48,570 nt of DNA from Lenisia limosa. Taxonomy: Eukaryota > Protista > Breviatea. Both the position numbers and the translations under genes were made by a program. The notes under the pieces were generated by a model. The model worked only from the letters and a program-made list of their open reading frames with translations. It did no database searches and had not been told where the DNA came from. Numbering within the stretch: the stretch's first letter is position 1; each line of letters begins with the position of its first letter. The stretch covers positions 1 through 48,570 of the forward strand of contig LPNZ01009078.1 in NCBI GenBank assembly GCA_001655205.1, read 5' to 3'. Shown here piece after piece: positions 29,328 through 48,570 of this stretch.

Positions 29328-31404
<2,077 letters not shown>

Positions 31405-36281: not shown

Positions 36282-39200
36282 CTAGAACGAAAAGAAGTCT
36301 CCTCCCATACCGCCCATACCACCACCACCCATTCCACCCATACCACCCATTCCTCCCATCATAGAGGCGAAGATATGGGCCATTTCAGGGGGGATTCCTC
36401 CTCCACCGCCGAATCCTCCACCGCCAAATTCTGAAGAGATCAATTGATTCAGCTTTTTTAGCCAACCCAAGGAATGGTTATTACCTACCAGGTCCATCAA
36501 TATCGTCACCATCGTCGTATCGCTGGCGTTTAGAGTGGTCCATGAGGATAGTGTAGGCTTCGTTAATCTGAATAGTTACTCGAAAGATCAAATAATATTC
36601 TTTGATTCAACACCATCATCATAAGGCTGATACTGAAAACTGCCTTTATTGCTTCCAATGGCTTACATCCTTGAACTTGGCCTCAGCCTCTTCTCTGTCA
36701 TCTGTTTGGTGTTTGTCGGGATGCCATTGCATGGCCAATCTAAAAGGTCAATGCAGTTGTCATAGTTACGGTGGAAAGTCTTGACCAACATAATCAGTGC
36801 GATACTCATTTCTCATTTCTACTGGGTATGAATGTAATATAACGTGTTGACTCTGATAAAACAAGGGTTTCTGACCGCTGTACCACTGCACCCACTTTCT
36901 ATATGCCTTTTTGATTTCGGGGTCAAGAGCAGTCTTTGAAACACCTATCAGGTTAAGGTTTGAATAATAATAATGATAATCATACGAGAGATAAAAACCA
37001 AAAAGATCAGATGACGAGTTCTCATGAGCCTACCCAAGATGCCGTAGTAGTCCTTACGAGCAGCTAACTTAACCTCCCTCTCAATCTCTCTCTTTTCCTG
37101 TTGGAGTTCCTAAACGCATTAGAAGGTGCATTATTCGGTGGACCCCTAGAAAGTCAAATCATACCCTGCTGTTTTCCATGCGGATACAGGCGTCAATGTC
37201 TCTTTCAGCTTCCTCGAATCGCTTCAGCTCTCGGAGGATGCGTGACCTTAAAGGTGAACCTTCAGATGGTTTGCAGTGCTTTACTATGCGTACTTTCTCT
37301 CACAATCCAAAACAAAATCTTTGACAGTGGCTCTCCCCACACACCTTCTTTGGTAAGGCTTCATCCACTCAGGGCGAAGCTCAATCGAGAAAGTGGCTTG
37401 GTCGTACGCCTCCTCGTATTCTGAAATGTTAAACATCTGTCCCACTATAACTAAGGCTTGTCCCAACCTGAAGTACAATGTGGCTGCTTTACCCCNNNNN
37501 NNNNNNNNNNNNNNNNNNNNNNNNNNNNNNNNNNNNNNNNNNNNNNNNNNNNNNNNNNNNNNNNNNNNNNNNNNNNNNNNNNNNNNAGGAACTCATTTTC
37601 TAGAATCTCAACGTAGAGCTAAACAGTCAGTTGGGGGGAAACGGCCAAAATATAGGTAAGAAAATCATATTCAGTCTTTTGCGATTTTTGTTTTTCTCTC
37701 ATACTCATCTTGAGATACATGTACAGCCTCACGCTCACCTCATAAGCCTTTTCACTACCAGTCTTGATGAGCTCAGCAGCCTGTGCCTTCTGTCTTTCAA
37801 TCTTCTTCACCATCTACCAGGTTAATAATTAATCAAATACAAGACACTCAATGGAAAGATGGCCATGTCTCCCAAGCTACCTTAAAGACAACCTTGATCT
37901 CAGCGGAATCAGGGTCTCTTTGGAGGGCATTCTGCAGGGACGACACACATACGTCGATCTTATTGAGTTTCAACTACAGTCTGTCAGGATTGCTACAGTT
38001 TTATACAGGATAGCTTCCATAAAGACCGCTAATGATACTGTAAGCTGGTTCCTTGCTCACCTGAGTCTTTGCTCTCAGGATCCAGGCATCAGTATGACCC
38101 TTGTTGTCCTACTTGGTGACAATTGATACTCAACAAAACTGTCAAGATGGAACCCGGGCAATATCATCTGATTGAGCATCGACAGTTCTTCAGGAAGCTT
38201 AGCAATACCCCGCCCACGTTGAGCACAGTGATACAGTGTTGAGAGGCCTCAGTGAGACGATTGGTGTGGTAGCAAGCCATGCCGAGTTTGAAGATAAGTG
38301 ACAAGTCGCAGTTGTTGGTACGGTGCTCGAGGACTATGGGGTCAAATTATAGCATATTCACAACAGCATGTTACCCCAAGGGACGACCACACCAGACACC
38401 ATACGTTTGTTACAAGAGCGGAACACCATTGCCCAGTTCTCGGTTTTAATGCCTTGCTCAACCTGTTGCTCGGCTCTGACGTAGATCTCAACTCGACTCA
38501 TCTATAGTGTCACAAATAAAGTGAGCACGTTTAAAACCCTGACCAGTTTGTCACAAGGTCACATACCTCTTCTCTGATTGAGGCATTCATCGGCTCCATA
38601 ACCTTGCCCCTCTTAATCACCTAAGAGCATCAATGGTGACTCACCACGAAATACATATTAATTGTTTGAAATAAATCTGTTATACTTTTAACATCGCAAA
38701 TCCAAATTCTTATCTTATGAACCTTGCCGACCTCAAGTGCCTTGGTGTAGTTTCCGCCAGCAACGAGAGCGGTGGAAAGGCGAAGGTATCCCTAGAATGT
38801 TGTCATCTCTGCAATCGTTTTTCACTGTTGTCCGAAAGGAAAAAAGAGGCCGGCGTAAAGGGGTATCAAAGAATGAAATCACCCACCTTGATGAAGTGCT
38901 TATCAGCCTCAATACAGCTTTCACCATCTCTGACTGCATCTTGCAAACGCTCAATCTTCATGTTGCTAGGTGGGAATGGTGATATAAACAGAATCATTTT
39001 ACGCTCTCCTTGGAATCAAAGAGCAACTTGACATATAATACTTCACAAAAGGCCTTGGAGTTTTATCAATTTAATTTGTCATATTCTTGAGATTCATGGA
39101 GCAAGAAATGATGATATTTGGTGAACAGAAAAACATCACTCACCAAAGTGATCTGTTGGAGTAGCATGCGGCATTCTTGGGATCCTCCTCTAAACGTTCG

Positions 39201-39391: not shown

Positions 39392-39908
39392 ATTGTATGA
39401 GTGTTTACGCTGAGTATCTCCAATAAAACAAGTTACAATACAACAACTGAGACACTTCAAGCAGTAGCTATCTCTAAAAGGTCTTTTTAGTACAAATTGT
39501 GTTACTCAAAATGACTGATAATACCTACCACAGAAACGAGCTTTATACATCAGCAGATTTCCGTCTAAACGCCATATTCAACTTTATTGCAAGGTTAAAC
39601 AATAATTAATTTAATAATACATGAATTTAAATAATAAATCTAGTAGTGAAAGGTTTGCTTCTATCTCTAGCTGGATGGAAAGATATTTAAATTGAATTGC
39701 ATAATTTAAAATTTCTTTTTTTTGCATAAAAACTCTCTCTGTGCATGTAACTGAGTTGGCTACTGCATTGCTGTTTGATAGAGCCTTGTTACTTAACTTC
39801 CAGTGATAGTTGATTTTGTGAATCAGTTGACCCGTTTCAAATAGCAAGAGTAAGCCATCTGATCATTTTAATATTGGAAATTAATGAGAAATAACCCAAA
39901 AAAGCTGA

Positions 39909-42900
39909 AGTTTGCTGACACAGGAATTGTTCCCCTAATATTTTCTTTCCCCCATTCATTCCCTTCCGCTCTTCCTATGACTTGTACTTATTTATAAAGT
40001 GGCTAAGTCCCGTTCCAAGGCCAACCGTGGGGGAGCCAAGCCCAAGCCCCAAAAGCCTGAGGTTGTCGTTCCCAAAGAAGCTGCCCCCGAGTCAGCCGGA
40101 AGCCCCGTAACCCCTGACGACAGAATTGACCCTGAAACTCGTGAATTTGCTGTTTGAGGGTTTCTTAAGGGAATAATTTAGATACCCCTCCAATTAGGCC
40201 TATTTCAATTCACATTTCAATTAGATGTCAGAAAGTGCAAGTGATAGAAATGTAATCTTCGGAAAAAACTGTTTCCAGAAAATTCACTGTATTTTTCCAG
40301 GAAAACTACAGAAAAAGTGGAAAAATCCCGACTCAAGTGTTTTCCAATCGAATTCCCCCTCGTTTTTTTTTGCTTGTTGTTGTCTTCCTTTTGTTACTCG
40401 GAGATTTCCTTCGCAAACTCGTGTTTTCCGGCCAGAAAACTCCTTGTAAAAAATCGGAAAACCACTTCCAGGAAAAAAAAACTCGGGGTTTTCACATTGG
40501 AAAAAACTGTTTCCAGAAAATTTACAAGTGTTTTCCATTCGAATTCCCCTTCGTTTTTTGCTCGTGGTTGGAAATTTGGTTACTAGTGTGTTTATAGCCA
40601 TGAAATTTGACTATTTTTTATACCGTAGAAAAACTCAGTGAAGACTCTCCTTTGGCTCGGTGCTGTCACCGGAAAAAAGGTAAGAGGAGCAGCTTTGATC
40701 CTCCCTATGCTCAGACGTATCTTCATCATCCACCTACATTCAGTCCTCTGAAGCCTTCCAGGTTCCGCACAACCAGGGACTTCTGACGTCCCTCTTTGAC
40801 GGCACCGTTTTGCTCAGCGTCGCCATGATCTTTGACCCTCTCGAAACGAGGAAAGACGCCAATGTATCAAAGTATGCATGGCATTGAGGGTACCTGAATG
40901 TGGTGGAGGTAACAGCCGGATACTCACAGTTTAGGGAGTCACGTGTGGAGTACTACACCTCAGTCATGGCCGAGGCTCAGCCGACCCTCCCTTTATTCAA
41001 ACCTGAGTAAGGCTGTGGATAGAAATTGTTGAGATTGCCCTATTTGCAGTCTTGTGACGATCTAGGGATCTTTTAAAGGGCACCAACCTGTGTGCCGTCC
41101 TGGCCCACTTCAAGGCTCTCAAGGACGTCTATAAGACCGAAGACTGGGGACTGGTATGTCTTCTAGCAATATGCATCTATTGAAACCATTTAATGTTGTC
41201 AATTACACGGAGTCAATTCCCTCGTCCTTCAATAACAGTTTAGAACAATTCCGTTCTCCCTCGTCCTTGTTTAGAACTACTCCGTTCTCCCTCGTCCTTC
41301 AATAACAATTTAGAACTACGACGTTGAACTCATCACCCCCCTTGTTCTCTGGCACGCACGTGAGGCTCTCTCAGGCTCACCCCCTCTCCCCAAGGTTTCA
41401 ACCAGGTGAGAGTTTGGCAATTGCCCCCGGGTCAGGATCCCTTTGTGAGGGAGTTTTTCTTTGTTTTTTCCCAAATCATATAGTACATGTATTTCCGAGA
41501 AACTACGTCAATTGGGTTGAAGTACTGCCCCCTCTCTGACACAGTAGCGCTGCTGCAGCCCCGGTTCAGAGCCCTTTCATTGCCGAAGAGAAATTGAAAA
41601 TAAAAAAGATGGCTGAAGCAAAGGAGAAGGTTGAGAAGAAGGAAGAGAAGAAGGTTGAAAAGAAGGAAGAGAAAAAGGTTGAGAAGAAGGAAGAGAAGAA
41701 GGTTGAGAAGAAGGAAGAGCCCAAGAAAACCAAAAAGAACAACGTATCCTTTGGAGCTCCCCAGGTTAGTGCATTAGACTAAATTGTCATTCAAAAAGCT
41801 TAAATTTATGTTTCAATTGACCCCCCCCCAGGTTCTCACAGCTGCCGGCCCCCGTGGTGCCCCCTTTATCCATGCCACCTTCCAGGTCTGTGAATTTTAC
41901 ATTGAATAAACACAATTGTGGTTCTAAGCTCCTTTTTGAAGGTCTCAATTGTTTTGCGAATGTACTTGTTTTTGGAGGGGTTTTTTTTGTTCATACAGTC
42001 GCCTTTACCCCCCAACAGATTTGATTTGGTCTTTTTTTGTTTCATAAATGTCCCAATTTTACCCCCCAGGTTGAATTCAAGTCAGCGCCCGGACAGAACC
42101 TGATTGTGACCGGCGCATGCCCGGTGCTGGGCACGTGGAACACGTCTCTTGGCGTTGCTATGTACTACCAGTTGGGTGTTGGCTGTACTGTAGTAGTTGT
42201 GTTGTTCAATACTGTCTTTGTTTATCAGCAGTTCAATACAGCCTTAACAATCTGCAGACCCTCAGGTATTTGGACCGCTTCTGTCAACATTGCTCCTGAG
42301 GACCTCAAGAAGACCAGCAGAGGTGAGCTGTAACCAAACAATATTCGTTCCACTGCATTTTGAAAGTTAGTCGTTTTTTTAGCTGTCTAAGGGGCTTCCC
42401 TACTCTCCCAAAAACACTTACCGGTTATTCCGTAGGGAATCCCTACGGTATTCAAACATACGTAATTACATAAATAAAGGAAACCAGTGGACCTCTTAAA
42501 AGACTATTTTGGCGCCATTTTTTATTCATTTTCTCGAAACCTCCAATCTATATCTTTCATGTTTAACATGGAGTTACTATTTGGTTTTGACGATGTTAGA
42601 TTCCACTTTCACATGACAGTTCATTTGAGCTTTTTGTTTCATAAATTTCCCATTTTACCCCCCCCCCCCTCAGGACTGGAGTTGGAGTACAAATACGTCG
42701 TCGTCGGCTCCGNNNNNNNNNNNNNNNNNNNNNNNNNNNNNNNNNNNNNNNNNNNNTCCGTGGTTCTCGATTGGGAGAGCCGCAGCAACCATGTCGCCAT
42801 TTTCGACCAGAGCTGCACTAAAACCGCCGCCGCCGTCCTTATCCGTGACGCCTGGAAGGTTCACGGGAGAGAATTCATTAAGCAAACCGAGATTCAACTC

Positions 42901-45900
42901 AAAACATCCCTCGCCCTTGGGCTTAACCTTGCCATTGTAACGCACATTGACTTTGTAGCCTGTGATGTCCTCCACTGATGTGATTGAGGAGAGTGACCTG
43001 TTCCATAGAGTTCTCTATCCCAGGTGAGTCCGTCTTCTTTGTACAGCGTTTCTACTCACAATAGCAACTGCAATTTGCATTGTTTTGTGTCTCTCATGGC
43101 TGACCCTTCAGACCTTACGCCGAGGAAGTTATTTGCCCCATCAAGGCTCGGACTGGTGAGTGTGGTTGCCTCAGTGGTATTATCTAATGGAGCTTGGAAG
43201 TAATGGTATAGAGAGTTCCGCCACTATGTTTTCCCTCTTTTTTATTGAAACAAGAAATAGTATATCGATATATATTTTTTATATCATATCTCATACATTA
43301 CATTTCCTCATCTACTCAGACGACAGAATTACGGTTCTCTTCATCTGTAACGCCATTCGCGTTGAGCGCAGCGCCCACGTGGCCCTTGTCGGCGCCTGCC
43401 CTGAGCTCGGTGTGTTGTCGTTATTTGTGTTTGTTCTTTTGAAACAAGGGAAACACGGTGACCTTGCAGGTGCATGGGACGACACGCATGCCCTCAAACT
43501 TGCTCCTTCTGACAACAAGTGGAGCGCTTCCGTTGACCTCCCTCGCTCCGCCTTTCCCCTCCAGTAAGCTCCTGATCATACCTACTGTTTGTCTGGCGTG
43601 ATTAAGCACATGTACATTCAGAAAGGACAGCACAGCAAACTCCCATGATTTCTCCTTTGCTTCACTCCCCCCTCCCCCCCCCCCTCTCTTTTTTCTGTCT
43701 CTGTATTCGTATTGACCCCCAGGTTCAAGTTCCTGAAGGCTGGATTTGGTGACACCGTGTGGGAGGCTGGGCCAAACAGAGTCCTCACCCCTGCTTTCAA
43801 TATCCAGGTACTGCAATAGTAGATCGATTTCATATAATGAAGCTATATGACATGTAGTATGTACCGCCTAACTCCGCAGTTTATCCGGGCCCATTTGGGC
43901 GGCTTCCGAACATCCGAAGGCCCCTGGAGAGGTGCCGGCTGTGTGGCTCCGGTTTTTGCACTCAAGTGGGGGGGGGGGGGGCTTGGNNNNNNNNNNNNNN
44001 NNNNNNNNNNNNNNNNNNNNNNNNNNNNNNNNNNNNNNNNNNNNNNNNNNNNNNNNNNNNNNNNNNNNNNNNNNNNNNNNNNNNNTAACAATGCAGGTCT
44101 AAGAAGTCACATGGCATTGGAGAGTACGCAGACATCAAGCCTCTTTGCAGCTGGGCCGCCAACGCTGGCCTCTGTGTCTTCCAAGTATGGGGATGAAGAT
44201 CTGGACAGAATGTGGCGCGGAAATGATAGCTATCATATCTGTAAAGTGGACTGTAGCGTTTTAACCTTCAGACACTTCCCATCAACGATACCATCAGTAC
44301 CTCAGATTGGCCTGATAGCTACCCCTACGAGTGAGGGGTATTGGTAGTGTTTTGTTCTTCAGCAGTTTTTCAGCCTAATTTTTTTTTTTTTTTTTGCATA
44401 TATTCGCATTACTCCCAGACCCATCTCGTCTTTTGCCTTGCACCCCNNNNNNNNNNNNNNNNNNNNNNNNNNNNNNNNNNNNNNNNNNNNNNNNNNNNNN
44501 NNNNNNNNNNNNNNNNNNNNNNNNNNNNNNNNNNNNNGAGCTGACCAAGGAAATCGAGGAGTCCCGCAAGCATCTCAACTCTCTTGAAAAGGTGAGGTGT
44601 TTGAATTCACTGATGGCCGAAAGCGGTGAATGGATAATTTTTGTGACATTGACACACCAATTGGAGACCCAAGGCATCTGACCTTTTAGATTGACTTCCA
44701 TGGAGTGTTGACAGCCAAGCTCGGCTTCTTACGTCGTCTCTGTGACCTGAATGCCCAGGTTTGCTGTAGACATAGCATAATATATCTTATAAGCGTGATG
44801 GTGCGGAGGGTTTTGGCCAAATAAATCCTTGTTTTATTTCTGATCTCTGAATACGACTCAAGTGGCGTGTTGATATACACTGACCGCGATACGTCTTGAC
44901 ACGATTGATTAGAGATTTCCTCAATATCCGTGTCATGACGTATCGCGGGCAGCGGGCAATGACAGGTAAGTCTTGACCGATTTTCCTGATGACAATTTTA
45001 TTCATATCGGTCAAGACTTACAGTGGTCATACCCAGAAGTGGTGTGTTGTTTTATCAGCAAGGATATATCACATCTGCGAGACCTCATCAGTCTTGTGTT
45101 TGCTCGGGTTGATCTGATGTTATTCATTCAATGACCTTTGTAGGACTTGAATAAGAACAGCGACTTCCTCACTTTCTGCAAGGACAATGAGGTTGGTGTC
45201 GTTTAATCCTTGTCCTATATAAAGGGTGCGGATTGATATTCCGGCTGTTAATTCTATTTACCCCCCCCTCCTCCCCAGTCTTGGCTTCTCCCCTACGCCA
45301 TTTACTGCCACTTCCGCGACCGCTTTGGCACGGCACACCACCTGGACTGGCCCAAGACGTTCCACCATCCCTCTATGGACTCCATCAAGGCCTGGGCCAC
45401 CGAGACCAACGCCGCCGTCAAGGTAGGCGCTTCAGGGGGCTTTGTTGTTCTTTTCGCAATCAATATGAACAGGGGGAATGGGCTGATAAATTGTTAACAA
45501 ACCAGGATGTGTTCTTCTGGCAGTTTGTGCAGTACCAGTGCCACGTGCAGCTGCTTGACGCCTCGCAACACGCGCAGAGCGTCGGCGTTGCAATCAAGGG
45601 TGGGTTATGGGGGACATGGAGTATTTTTGGCCGAATCTTTCACCATCATCACGATTAATAGAGGGGGGGGGGTGAATAATGGGTTAAACGGTTCATCTTT
45701 CAACGAGAATAGAGAAGTGAGCTTACTGTTTCCAGGAGATATCCCCATTGGCGTTGGTGAATCATCGGTTGAAAGCTGGTTGCAACCTCACCTCTTCCAC
45801 ATGGACAAATCCGCAGGTGTGTAAAGGGCACCCTGGTATTTCACAGAAAGTAGCTACCACGATGGCATTTGAGCCAAGCATCCCAGTTTGACACTCCAGG

Positions 45901-48570
45901 AGCCCCCCCTGACGACTTCTCTCCTGTCGGACAGAACTGGTCCTTCCCGACGTACAACTGGGACGCCATGGCCGCCGAGGACTACGCCTGGTGGACCACG
46001 CGTCTTGCCAATATGGCCAAGTGGGAAGGGGGTCTTTTGAAAAACGTGTGTATTCCCGTCTTACCACCCCAGGTACTTCCATGCCTTCCGCATTGACCAC
46101 ATCCTCGGGTTCCTTCGCATTTGGGAGGCGGACAGGCGCGAAATTGGCTCCGTTCGTGGCCACTTCAGACCCGCCATCCCCATCCACAGGTCCGCTGGCA
46201 ATCATCATCTGTTGCAAGAGTCACAAATATTATGTACTATAGCATATCATATATATATACAAGTTGCTATTGTTGCCACTTACATTGTAGACACGAGCTT
46301 GAGCGTGTCGGCATTTGGGACATCCGTCGACTGACTGAGCCTTTTGTTCTGCAGGAGGACATCATCGAGCATTTTGGCACTGGGCTTGGTGCAACTGAGC
46401 TTCTGGTGGGCATTGGAACGGATTTTCTTCATACCCGAAACTCTCTGACACACATGCAAGATTCTCTGTTGGTCTCGTCGTCTTGGTACTTCTGAGATAA
46501 TCTAATTTCCGGCTTTCTGTCCGCATTAGGCCTTAATTCAATAGTCACACTTCTTTGACGTTGTCGGCGACCGCCTCCTTTTCAAGCCGCACATTAAGGG
46601 CGAGAAGCAGATCAAGGCCATGCTCGACAGCCTCCCCACTTACTGCAGCAACTTGAAACATGTAGGGGTTACTTTGTATAACCAAGCATTGTGTAAGATG
46701 GCAGTATATTTCACCTTACCCATGACGACAAAGGCTTCACTTCGGTTGAGTCGATATTTTTCGAGTATTTATCGAGATATTCAGTCTTTTTTCGAACCGA
46801 AGTGAAGCCCTACCATTGACGCAGTATTGACGATTCAGTGGTACGTCAATGACCCGAACTACCACGACCCTAAAGAGCGTCTTGCTGAGCCCCAGGCCAA
46901 TGGCCCTCCCCACGTCCTTTCTTCCCTGGTAGGCTGTGTTGTGTTACGTTCTTTCTTCCCTTACATTGCTTCAAGAATGTCGTCTTTTTTGTTTCCCAAG
47001 TGAAGCCGTATATTCACAGTGCTAACCCGCAGATGTTCCTCTGGAATAATGTCATAATGGTGCGCGACAGTGAGGATCCGGACAACCTCTTCCACCCCCG
47101 TTACGACAACCACAAGACCAAGAGCTTTGAATGTTTGTTTGGGCCAACAGAGAGCTTTGAATGTTAAAATTGGAATACTACCCCCCCCCCCCAATGGGAT
47201 NNNNNNNNNNNNNNNNNNNNNNNNNNNNNNNNNNNNNNNNNNNNNNNNNNNNNNNNNNNNNNNNNNNNNNNNNNNNNNNNNNNNNNNNNNNNNCACCTTC
47301 GTTTGTTGCTTGATGTTGAGCAATGCGAACTGATTAATACCATCTCTGGACACTCCTGATATCACAGACCTTGACTGGAGTTGGCAAAACAGCCTGAAGG
47401 AGCTGACCCTCAACTACTTCCATGTTAGACAAGATGACTTCTGGACCCACAACTGGTGGGCTTCTTGAGCTAAGGCAAATGCTGCTTATGTGTGCAGCTC
47501 ACCCTATAAAACCACTTCCCATTGTATTTTCTACTGTATCATATAGCTACATTACCAGACCCCAAGCTTAACCAATCAGCAACCCCAAGCTCCGTGCACT
47601 CACCGCCGCCTCCAACATGCTTGTCTGTGGTGAGGACCTGGGTATGGTTCCCGACTGCTGCAAGCACATTATGGCCGACTTCAAGATGCTTCGACTTTGC
47701 ATCCCTCGCTTCGTGGGGGGGGGGGGGAGGCAGTGNNNNNNNNNNNNNNNNNNNNNNNNNNNNNNNNNNNNNNNNNNNNNNNNNNNNNNNNNNNNNNNNN
47801 NNNNNNNNNNNNNNNNNNNNNNNNNNNNNNNNNNNNNNNNNTGGGACTCAAAACGATTATACAAAAATATTTTATATTTTCACAGTAATGCATGGGATAT
47901 AGAAATGCCTACTTTAGAATTTTGACTTACTATTTGTTTCTTTGTAGCCTTCAAAATCTGAACAGAAAAATATACATATAAAAAGCTTGTCCGGAGTTTT
48001 AATGTGCTCGGTTCATTTTGAATGTANNNNNNNNNNNNNNNNNNNNNNNNNNNNNNNNNNNNNNNNNNNNNNNNNNNNNNNNNNNNNNNNNNNNNNNNNN
48101 NNNNNNNNNNNNNNNNNNNNNNNNNNNNNNNNNNNNNNNNNNNNNNNNNNNNNNNNNNNNNNNNNNNNNNNNNNNNNNNNNNNNNNNNNNNNNNNNNNNN
48201 NNNNNNNNNNNNNNNNNNNNNNNNNNNNNNNNNNNNNTCCCCTATTTGTCCGTCAGTGCTCCCTCATGTCACGACAGCTCTTCTCTCAGAGGTAAAGATC
48301 CGCCATATTTGCGATTCATTTGACCATCAAGGCTGGTGGGAAGAAGACCGCGAAGTTGTGCAGTCGTTCTGGAACCATGCGCTCAACCAGCATGGCGCCG
48401 CTCCTGATACCTGCACTACCGAGGTTCGTCTTGTGTCATTGATATAGGCCATCTTAGCTTACACCCCACGTGCCCATTACTATTTCTCTTTTATTCGTCT
48501 AGGTGGCCAAGCTGGTAGTCGAGCGTCTCCTCAATGCTGGAAACATGCTGTCAATGTTCCCTCTCCAGGT
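39909..48570 (+). CDS. DPE2: DPE2-type 4-alpha-glucanotransferase (2x CBM20 + GH77), apparently fused to an N-terminal calponin-homology domain; 3'-truncated by the window end
   Basis: CBM20-1: GQNLIVTGACPVLGTW..LEYKYVV..WE. CBM20-2: VALVGACPELGAWD..FKFL..WEAGPNR. GH77: WRGAG..PVFALK, LPINDT, DSYPY, KGDIPIGV, GAPPDDFS..GQNWSFPTYNW, FRIDHILG, GEDLG, SCHDSSSLRGWWEED. DPE2 identity is high confidence; the CH fusion is about 0.65. Confidence 0.9.
40260..40560. repeat. Degenerate direct repeats inside a 477-nt intron
   Basis: GGAAAAAACTGTTTCCAGAAAATT near 40261 and near 40499; CAAGTGTTTTCCA(A/T)TCGAATTCCCC..CGTTTTTT near 40334 and near 40526. Confidence 0.75.
40629..41153 (+). other. Calponin-homology (CH) domain coding exons
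   Basis: Spliced exons give KTLLWLGAVTGKK..LLTSLFDGTVLLSVAMIFDP..FRESRVEYY..PLFKPEDLLKGTNLCAVLAHFKALK, matching the calponin-type pattern W..VTG / L.DG..L / F...DL..G.N...V...L.AL. Confidence 0.72.
41217..41320 (+). repeat. Three imperfect 31-39 bp tandem units, each ending in TTTAG|AAC
   Basis: Units of CCGTTCTCCCTCGTCCTT(CAATAACA)..TTTAGAAC(T/A)A, with AG ending at 41243, 41274 and 41313. Confidence 0.85.
41627..41720 (+). repeat. Coding 21-bp tandem repeat, about 4 copies, encoding (KVEKKEE)n
   Basis: AAGGTTGAGAAGAAGGAAGAG units; translation KEKVEKKEEKKVEKKEEKKVEKKEEKKVEKKEEPKK. Confidence 0.9.

Follow-up and report, generated by a model that had tools for sequence, protein, structure and literature searches.

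The DNA analysed here, referred to as the window, is a 48,570-nt stretch of Lenisia limosa contig LPNZ01009078.1 (positions 1 to 48,570, forward strand). It has approximately 42% GC content and belongs to a eukaryotic contig, and its introns are of the ordinary GT-AG type, ranging from 40 to 477 nt in length. Transcript evidence was taken from the assembled contigs of one RNA run (X1) and genomic evidence from one DNA run (X2). An enolase gene is located at approximately 29541-31404 (Pfam Enolase_C, E 4.7e-45), upstream of the exons described below and, like them, on the plus strand, and a DnaJ/TPR-like gene at approximately 36285-38800 on the minus strand. Coding-potential scans gave intergenic spacings of 0.9 to 5 kb, and the contig is gene-poor. 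Beyond these genes the plus strand carries a group of short exons encoding a putative calponin-homology (CH) module, followed by a gene of the DPE2 type that leaves the window at its end.

The first DPE2 exon (41548-41764) contains 13 coding-like codons, an A-rich stretch, the ATG at 41609 and a Lys/Glu-rich linker, which lies downstream of that ATG and in which a 24-nt repeat unit encoding KVEKKEEK occurs four times (41625-41719). The repeat makes part of a contig-free stretch of the RNA assembly, described below, hard to assemble. Fourteen GT-AG junctions of the gene were verified with mRNA contigs: 41764/41832, 41885/42070 and 42170/42258 at the 5' end, and eleven from 45191/45279 to 47455/47580 within a single 1714-nt contig that extends 210 nt past the window end (48570). 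Coverage by spliced mRNA contigs extends over 41685-42322 and again from 45144 past position 48570, with low-depth contigs between these two parts, and a loose end in the mRNA links 43155 to 43320. A protein model of 942 aa, starting at ATG 41609, was built from the mRNA junctions and from alignments with homologues.

The first CBM20 domain is encoded by exons 41832-41885, 42070-42170, 42258-42322 and 42674-42858, as determined from mRNA junctions, gap bridging and a Pfam match; a 33-aa exon piece matches PF00686 with an E of 9.5e-5 and 22.6 bits, against a cut-off of 23.3 bits. The linker between the CBM20 domains and the second CBM20 were placed by homologue alignment on exons 42959-43023, 43112-43155, 43320-43409, 43470-43563 and 43723-43807, the exon pieces of this second domain being too short to give a Pfam match singly. 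The GH77 domain occupies 43880-48569 and matches PF02446 on four exons (E 2.7e-15 to 6.5e-5). The catalytic motifs of GH77 enzymes supply the nucleophile Asp (RIDH), the acid/base Glu (GEDLG) and a further Asp (HD), and these were located at 46090-46101, 47631-47645 and approximately 48270, respectively; RIDH, GEDLG and SCHD stand at model residues 610, 830 and 880 and are aligned with those of the homologues. A long insertion within the GH77 barrel separates DPE2 from DPE1/MalQ, and the 220 residues between RIDH and GEDLG correspond to this DPE2-type insertion, the same region aligning in DPE2 homologues.

From residues 65-69 to its end, the model aligns as one segment with full-length homologues in which Pfam identifies two CBM20 domains and GH77. 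The preliminary description of this DNA had assigned two CBM20 domains, a GH77 domain and all three catalytic motifs to the gene, and this identification is borne out by the Pfam matches, the motifs and the homologue alignment. As in the DPE2 proteins of plants, Amoebozoa and many Bacteroidota, two N-terminal CBM20 domains precede a GH77 barrel with RIDH, GEDLG and HD, and homologues of approximately 900 aa can be aligned with the model from end to end. The predicted protein differs from known DPE2 in having a 64-aa Lys/Glu-rich extension ahead of the first CBM20, to which a CH domain would be added if the splice considered below is real. Identity to the homologues is only 33-38%, and none closer than 38% was found in the searched libraries. 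The DPE2 gene is thus divergent, expressed, spliced and intact over its readable length.

Six assembly gaps fall within this gene, and all six were bridged using the DNA contigs and the mRNA contigs; five of them are harmless, being intronic or read through in frame. The gap at 42713-42756 has a true length of 5 nt (ACAAG) and keeps the frame (VVGS-DK-SVVLDW). Those at 43987-44085 (42 nt) and 47736-47841 (40 nt) lie inside introns, as does that at 47201-47293 (39 nt), which is skipped by the mRNA. The gap at 44447-44537 is exonic and approximately 39 nt long, or 13 codons, and was judged to be in frame from its length alone, its letters being unread. That at 48027-48237 (110 nt) contains the start of an exon, for which the mRNA restores the 39-40 absent letters and keeps the frame (RFANDPNSDFIHPDTF/PYLSVSAPSCHD). 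The proposed fusion junction is untouched by any gap.

Upstream of the DPE2 gene, the preliminary description had joined exons 40000-40151 (exon 1), 40629-40679 (exon 2), 40762-40863 (exon 3), 40930-41006 (exon 4), 41066-41153 (exon 5), 41314-41405 (exon 6) and 41545 onward (exon 7), and these were found to form a single frame with zero stops, as proposed. An alternative acceptor for exon 3 at 40744 likewise leaves the frame open. All of the proposed CH-side junctions have a GT donor and an AG acceptor. Exon 1, which was delimited by its open frame and its coding score, would encode a basic, Pro-rich N-terminus (MAKSRSK...) followed by the lead-in to the CH-like domain. That domain, of approximately 106 aa (residues 52-157), is placed on exons 2 to 5 by the in-frame joins, a Pfam match and a held-out coding score; exon 6 (NYDVELITPLVLWHAREAL...PKVST) is the last on the CH side. 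Held-out codon scoring with a model trained on the DPE2 body marked the CH exons as coding, with a mean of +10.6 per 21 codons versus -16 for introns, and exons 1, 3, 5 and 6 were also recovered by a blind coding scan. Splice sites were scored with a matrix built from 26 supported introns, and scores were poor at several CH-side sites, including the donors at 40864 (-6.3) and 40152 (0.5).

No in-frame ATG is present in exon 1, and an in-frame TGA is located just upstream at 39978-39980. The exon opens with TG GCT directly after an AG. A donor at 39849/39850 (CAAGA/gtaagc) could supply the A of A/TG GCT at 40000, in which case an upstream 5' non-coding exon would end at 39849 and the first intron (39850-39999, plus strand) would split the start codon. 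The start context obtained by joining 39849 to 40000 is AAGATGGCT, matching those of the enolase and DPE2 starts; the sites of the proposed intron are weak (donor 2.5, acceptor -5.5). We infer that the CH start codon may be assembled by splicing out this intron. A spliced leader was also considered as the source of the missing A and was set aside, the upstream exon ending at 39849 being preferred.

When the 51-aa peptide of exons 2 and 3 was compared with Pfam, the sole match was CH (PF00307), with 15.2 bits and an E of 0.025; this match covers profile positions 7-47 of 109 and falls under the 26-bit cut-off. The same peptide gave no match to PDB sequences, and the individual CH exons, which at 17-34 aa are too short to score, gave none in Pfam, PDB sequences or the Atlas. 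By eye, the region carries what we take to be the calponin/transgelin pattern LLxWLxxVTG...LxDGxVL followed by LFxPxDLxxGxN, its second half reading LF.P.DL..G.N...VL. The CH domain of the preliminary description thus receives weak support, from a sub-threshold match to the N-terminal half of the profile and from the residue pattern recognized by eye. From these features, the N-terminal module is probably CH-like. The single-CH proteins of the calponin/transgelin/Scp1 group similarly have one CH-like domain near the N-terminus, and a stand-alone CH product of this locus would be approximately 188 aa in length. They differ from the present sequence in that no calponin-like repeat follows the CH-like domain here, and in that the ORF here may run on into an enzyme.

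Whether it does so depends on the region between exon 6 and ATG 41609. Exon 6 ends at 41405 with a donor (CAG/gtgaga) whose score of 9.6 exceeds that of 81% of true donors and places it among the best 1% of all GT sites of the window. Without splicing at this position the CH ORF comprises 188 aa and ends at the TGA at 41406-41408, so that the donor overlaps the stop codon of the unspliced frame (AGG TGA); for a true gene end, a donor placed exactly at the stop is an unlikely coincidence. Two acceptors, at 41544 (cacag/, score -0.4) and 41547 (cacagtag/, score 5.6, near the mean of true sites), are both in phase, and there are no others before ATG 41609. The candidate fusion intron (41406-41544/41547, plus strand) would therefore be 139 or 142 nt long. 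Its interior is strongly non-coding by codon score, and the region is single copy in the DNA run.

An in-frame TGA at 41537-41539 lies 5-8 nt before the two acceptors, leaving the open frame ahead of ATG 41609 without a start of its own. The 13 Ser/Ala/Pro-rich codons at 41546-41584 score +9.4 with the DPE2-trained model, a value that none of 2861 intron windows reaches and that lies above 99.85% of the windows from intergenic sequence. A table trained on enolase gives a weaker signal: compared with intron windows these codons rank within the top 3%, and their frame is the best of the three.

These signals would be explained if the intron at 41406-41544/41547 were removed, joining the CH exons and the DPE2 gene in one transcription unit. 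The locus could also consist of two neighbouring genes, a transgelin-like 188-aa single-CH protein ending at the TGA at 41406-41408 and an ordinary DPE2 that begins at ATG 41609 and has a promoter of its own within the 200-nt spacer, with the in-frame join as a coincidence. We regard this arrangement as quite possible. A stand-alone single-CH protein of 188 aa is an ordinary type of gene, the CH call below the Pfam threshold counts against a fusion, and by our own estimate the chance of a phase match together with 21 stop-free codons is approximately 1 in 8. Two separate genes would nevertheless require that a top-1% donor overlap a stop codon by chance, that an acceptor of the right phase lie ahead of ATG 41609, and that 13 frame-specific, coding-like codons occur within a 5'UTR. 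A 3'UTR, poly(A) site, promoter and second 5'UTR would also have to be squeezed into the just 200 nt between the unspliced CH-side stop and ATG 41609, on a gene-poor contig, and there is no AATAAA in 41409-41544.

The sequence around ATG 41609 bears on the same choice. This ATG sits in AAGATGGCT, the same 9-mer as at the putative CH start, and the enolase start is AAAATGGCT. The eight codons before it are A-rich and include rare codons (AAA three times, ATA once). Both the local start context and the A-rich leader with its rare codons favour two genes. Pointing towards a fusion, a DPE2-only protein would open with a 64-aa charged spacer that has no domain ahead of it to hold apart, and most homologues start within approximately 25 residues of the first CBM20. 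Under the reading with a joined transcript, ATG 41609 would probably also yield a DPE2-only product from shorter transcripts.

It is also conceivable that the donor at 41405 is used but that no CH-enzyme protein results, either because the product is a CH domain with a Lys/Glu tail that stops in a retained intron from 41765 onward, or because the CH exons, as an ORF that is decaying or has been joined wrongly, act only as a 5' leader. Read-through into the intron at 41765 does reach a stop after 5 codons, and the poor splice scores at donors 40864 and 40152 also count in favour of such an outcome. The CH exons, however, still score clearly as coding, and their CH-like pattern is intact, and nothing suggests a poly(A) site within the DPE2 exon, so we consider such an outcome very improbable.

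The RNA run was examined for transcripts joining the CH exons to the enzyme. Its contigs cover nearly every DPE2 exon from 41685 on, with a depth of 1.4-5 in the 5' half of the gene. No contig was found on 39900-41684, which includes the CH exons and 41545-41684, and words sampled from 40629-41620 were all absent from the run. Had the unique sequence 41545-41620 and the CH exons been covered like the neighbouring exons, they should have appeared. This pattern, with DPE2 covered from 41685, no CH exon represented and nothing on 41545-41684, is a point in favour of two genes. An exact-match scan of JGI metagenome contigs found neither the spliced junction nor the 5' end of exon 7. The RNA run neither shows nor excludes the junction 41405/41545, and fits a DPE2-only transcript slightly better. 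Support for the single CH-linker-DPE2 polypeptide that had been described consists of sequence signals, namely the splice strength, the phase, the coding-like codons before the ATG and the tight spacing; a transcript across 41405/41545 was not seen among the contigs of this run.

Relatives of the enzyme were searched for a similar arrangement. Approximately 390 DPE2 homologues were collected, comprising 150 representatives found with a GH77 exon and 237 word-index matches whose Pfam records were already available, and phmmer was also run locally; the first of two homologue-seeded word-index searches had a poor seed and returned mostly Bacteroidota proteins. None of these homologues has a CH domain or a similar N-terminus. 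Their N-terminal extras consist of additional CBM20 domains or unassigned sequence, never CH. Homologue P0055 has an N-terminal extension that looked PUB-like on visual inspection; Pfam did not bear this out, and the idea was rejected. A literature search revealed no CH domain on any glycoside hydrolase or transferase and no pairing of CH with DPE2. The earlier statement that no CH-DPE2 fusion is known thus agrees with both the homologues and the searched literature. The absence of this architecture among the homologues is a further argument for two genes, and lineage-specific domain fusions are common in protists. If real, the CH module would be an accessory domain new to the DPE2 enzyme family, and the system as such would be of a familiar kind.

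Fully separate genes would not readily account for the splice-site and coding-frame signals, nor would a fusion as the only product readily account for the start context and RNA coverage; a locus making both products fits all of these observations. On the strength of the sequence signals, we lean towards the view that a fusion product is made at this locus. The single transcription unit would then encode, at least as one isoform, a protein of three parts: an N-terminal single calponin-type CH domain of approximately 106 aa; a low-complexity spacer of approximately 120 aa that is Ser/Pro/Ala-rich and then carries the four KVEKKEEK repeats; and a complete DPE2 with two CBM20 domains and a GH77 domain containing the long DPE2 insertion. 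Of the proposed protein, over 1150 aa would fall inside the window.

In the cytosol, DPE2 takes a glucosyl unit from maltose or maltodextrin and passes it to a glycogen-like acceptor. The predicted protein has every residue required for this transglucosylation, and by analogy with DPE2 elsewhere the enzyme would be expected to carry out cytosolic disproportionation between maltose or maltodextrin and glycogen. The CH module might conceivably bring the enzyme to actin or to a partner in the cytoskeleton or a scaffold, where it could supply glucose locally, as the preliminary description suggested. By themselves, single CH domains of the calponin type often fail to bind F-actin. There are enzymes with a CH module for placement: MICAL combines a monooxygenase with CH, and Vav combines CH with a GEF. 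These resemble the predicted protein, as a working analogy only, in having a catalytic domain and one CH domain connected through flexible linkers, whereas their catalytic domains are unrelated to DPE2 and their domain order is different. That the fusion is real and that its CH module, set off by a charged helical spacer, anchors glycogen or maltodextrin remodelling to a cytoskeletal scaffold such as the actin cortex is, taken together, a rather unlikely proposition.

Without a real splice, the locus would hold an ordinary divergent DPE2 beside an ordinary small CH protein, and would illustrate how neighbouring genes in the same frame may look like a fusion. With a real splice, the product would be a storage-carbohydrate enzyme with a cytoskeleton-type address tag, and spatial control of glycogen use would become testable in a protist. 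Should the anchoring also be true, the protein would be the first member of a glycoside hydrolase family to carry a CH domain for targeting, and the turnover of storage glucan would be positioned where a motile, probably anaerobic, protist spends its energy.

The introns of the window are 40-477 nt in length and of the GT-AG class. Apart from the gene with the calponin-homology-like domain (the CH gene) and the downstream 4-alpha-glucanotransferase gene (DPE2), the window carries an enolase gene on the + strand (29541-31404; Pfam E 4.7e-45), with introns of approximately 50-110 nt, and a DnaJ/TPR-like gene on the - strand (36285-38800), which has a weak DnaJ match (E 0.004) and a Gly/Met-rich C-terminus. 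The start codon of the CH gene appears to be split A|TG by a 150-nt intron (39849/40000), and the context AA[A/G]ATGGCT is common to all three starts seen on the contig, namely those of enolase, the CH gene and DPE2. At position 47675 the window has a C, while the contigs from the DNA and RNA sequencing runs both have an A, a change that turns Ala into Asp within ..KHIMADF... The discrepancy reflects either an error in the assembly or allelic variation, and not editing.

Repeated sequence was found within the introns of both the CH gene and DPE2. In intron 1 of the CH gene, the region 40260-40570 contains a repeat of approximately 100 nt in two direct copies, 191-238 nt apart. DNA-run depth in this region was approximately 2,200, compared to a baseline of 35, indicating that a dispersed repeat has enlarged this 477-nt intron. 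The CH-gene intron at 41154-41313 is marked by a tandem duplication (41218-41325), made up of a 31-nt unit present twice and a 38-nt repeat, 70 nt apart. Since the duplication reproduces the acceptor region, caataaca[g/a]tttag, a second acceptor-like site is located upstream, at approximately 41243.

Within DPE2, a MITE-like element with terminal inverted repeats, GGCTTCACTTCGGTT ... AACCGAAGTGAAGCC, was identified at 46700-46815, and DNA-run depth over this element was approximately 37,000, against a baseline of approximately 30. The element is enclosed in its entirety by the intron at 46662-46838, which the mRNA shows to be cleanly removed.

In two other DPE2 introns, the final 40 nt or so of each consists of a copy of one and the same repeat (42030-42069 and 42630-42673), reading TTTTTGTTTCATAAAT.TCCCA.TTTTACCCCCC..ag. 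DNA-run depth reached approximately 45,000 at the first copy and approximately 15,000 at the second, compared to a baseline of approximately 35. The 3' ends of these introns are thus provided by an element of very high copy number.
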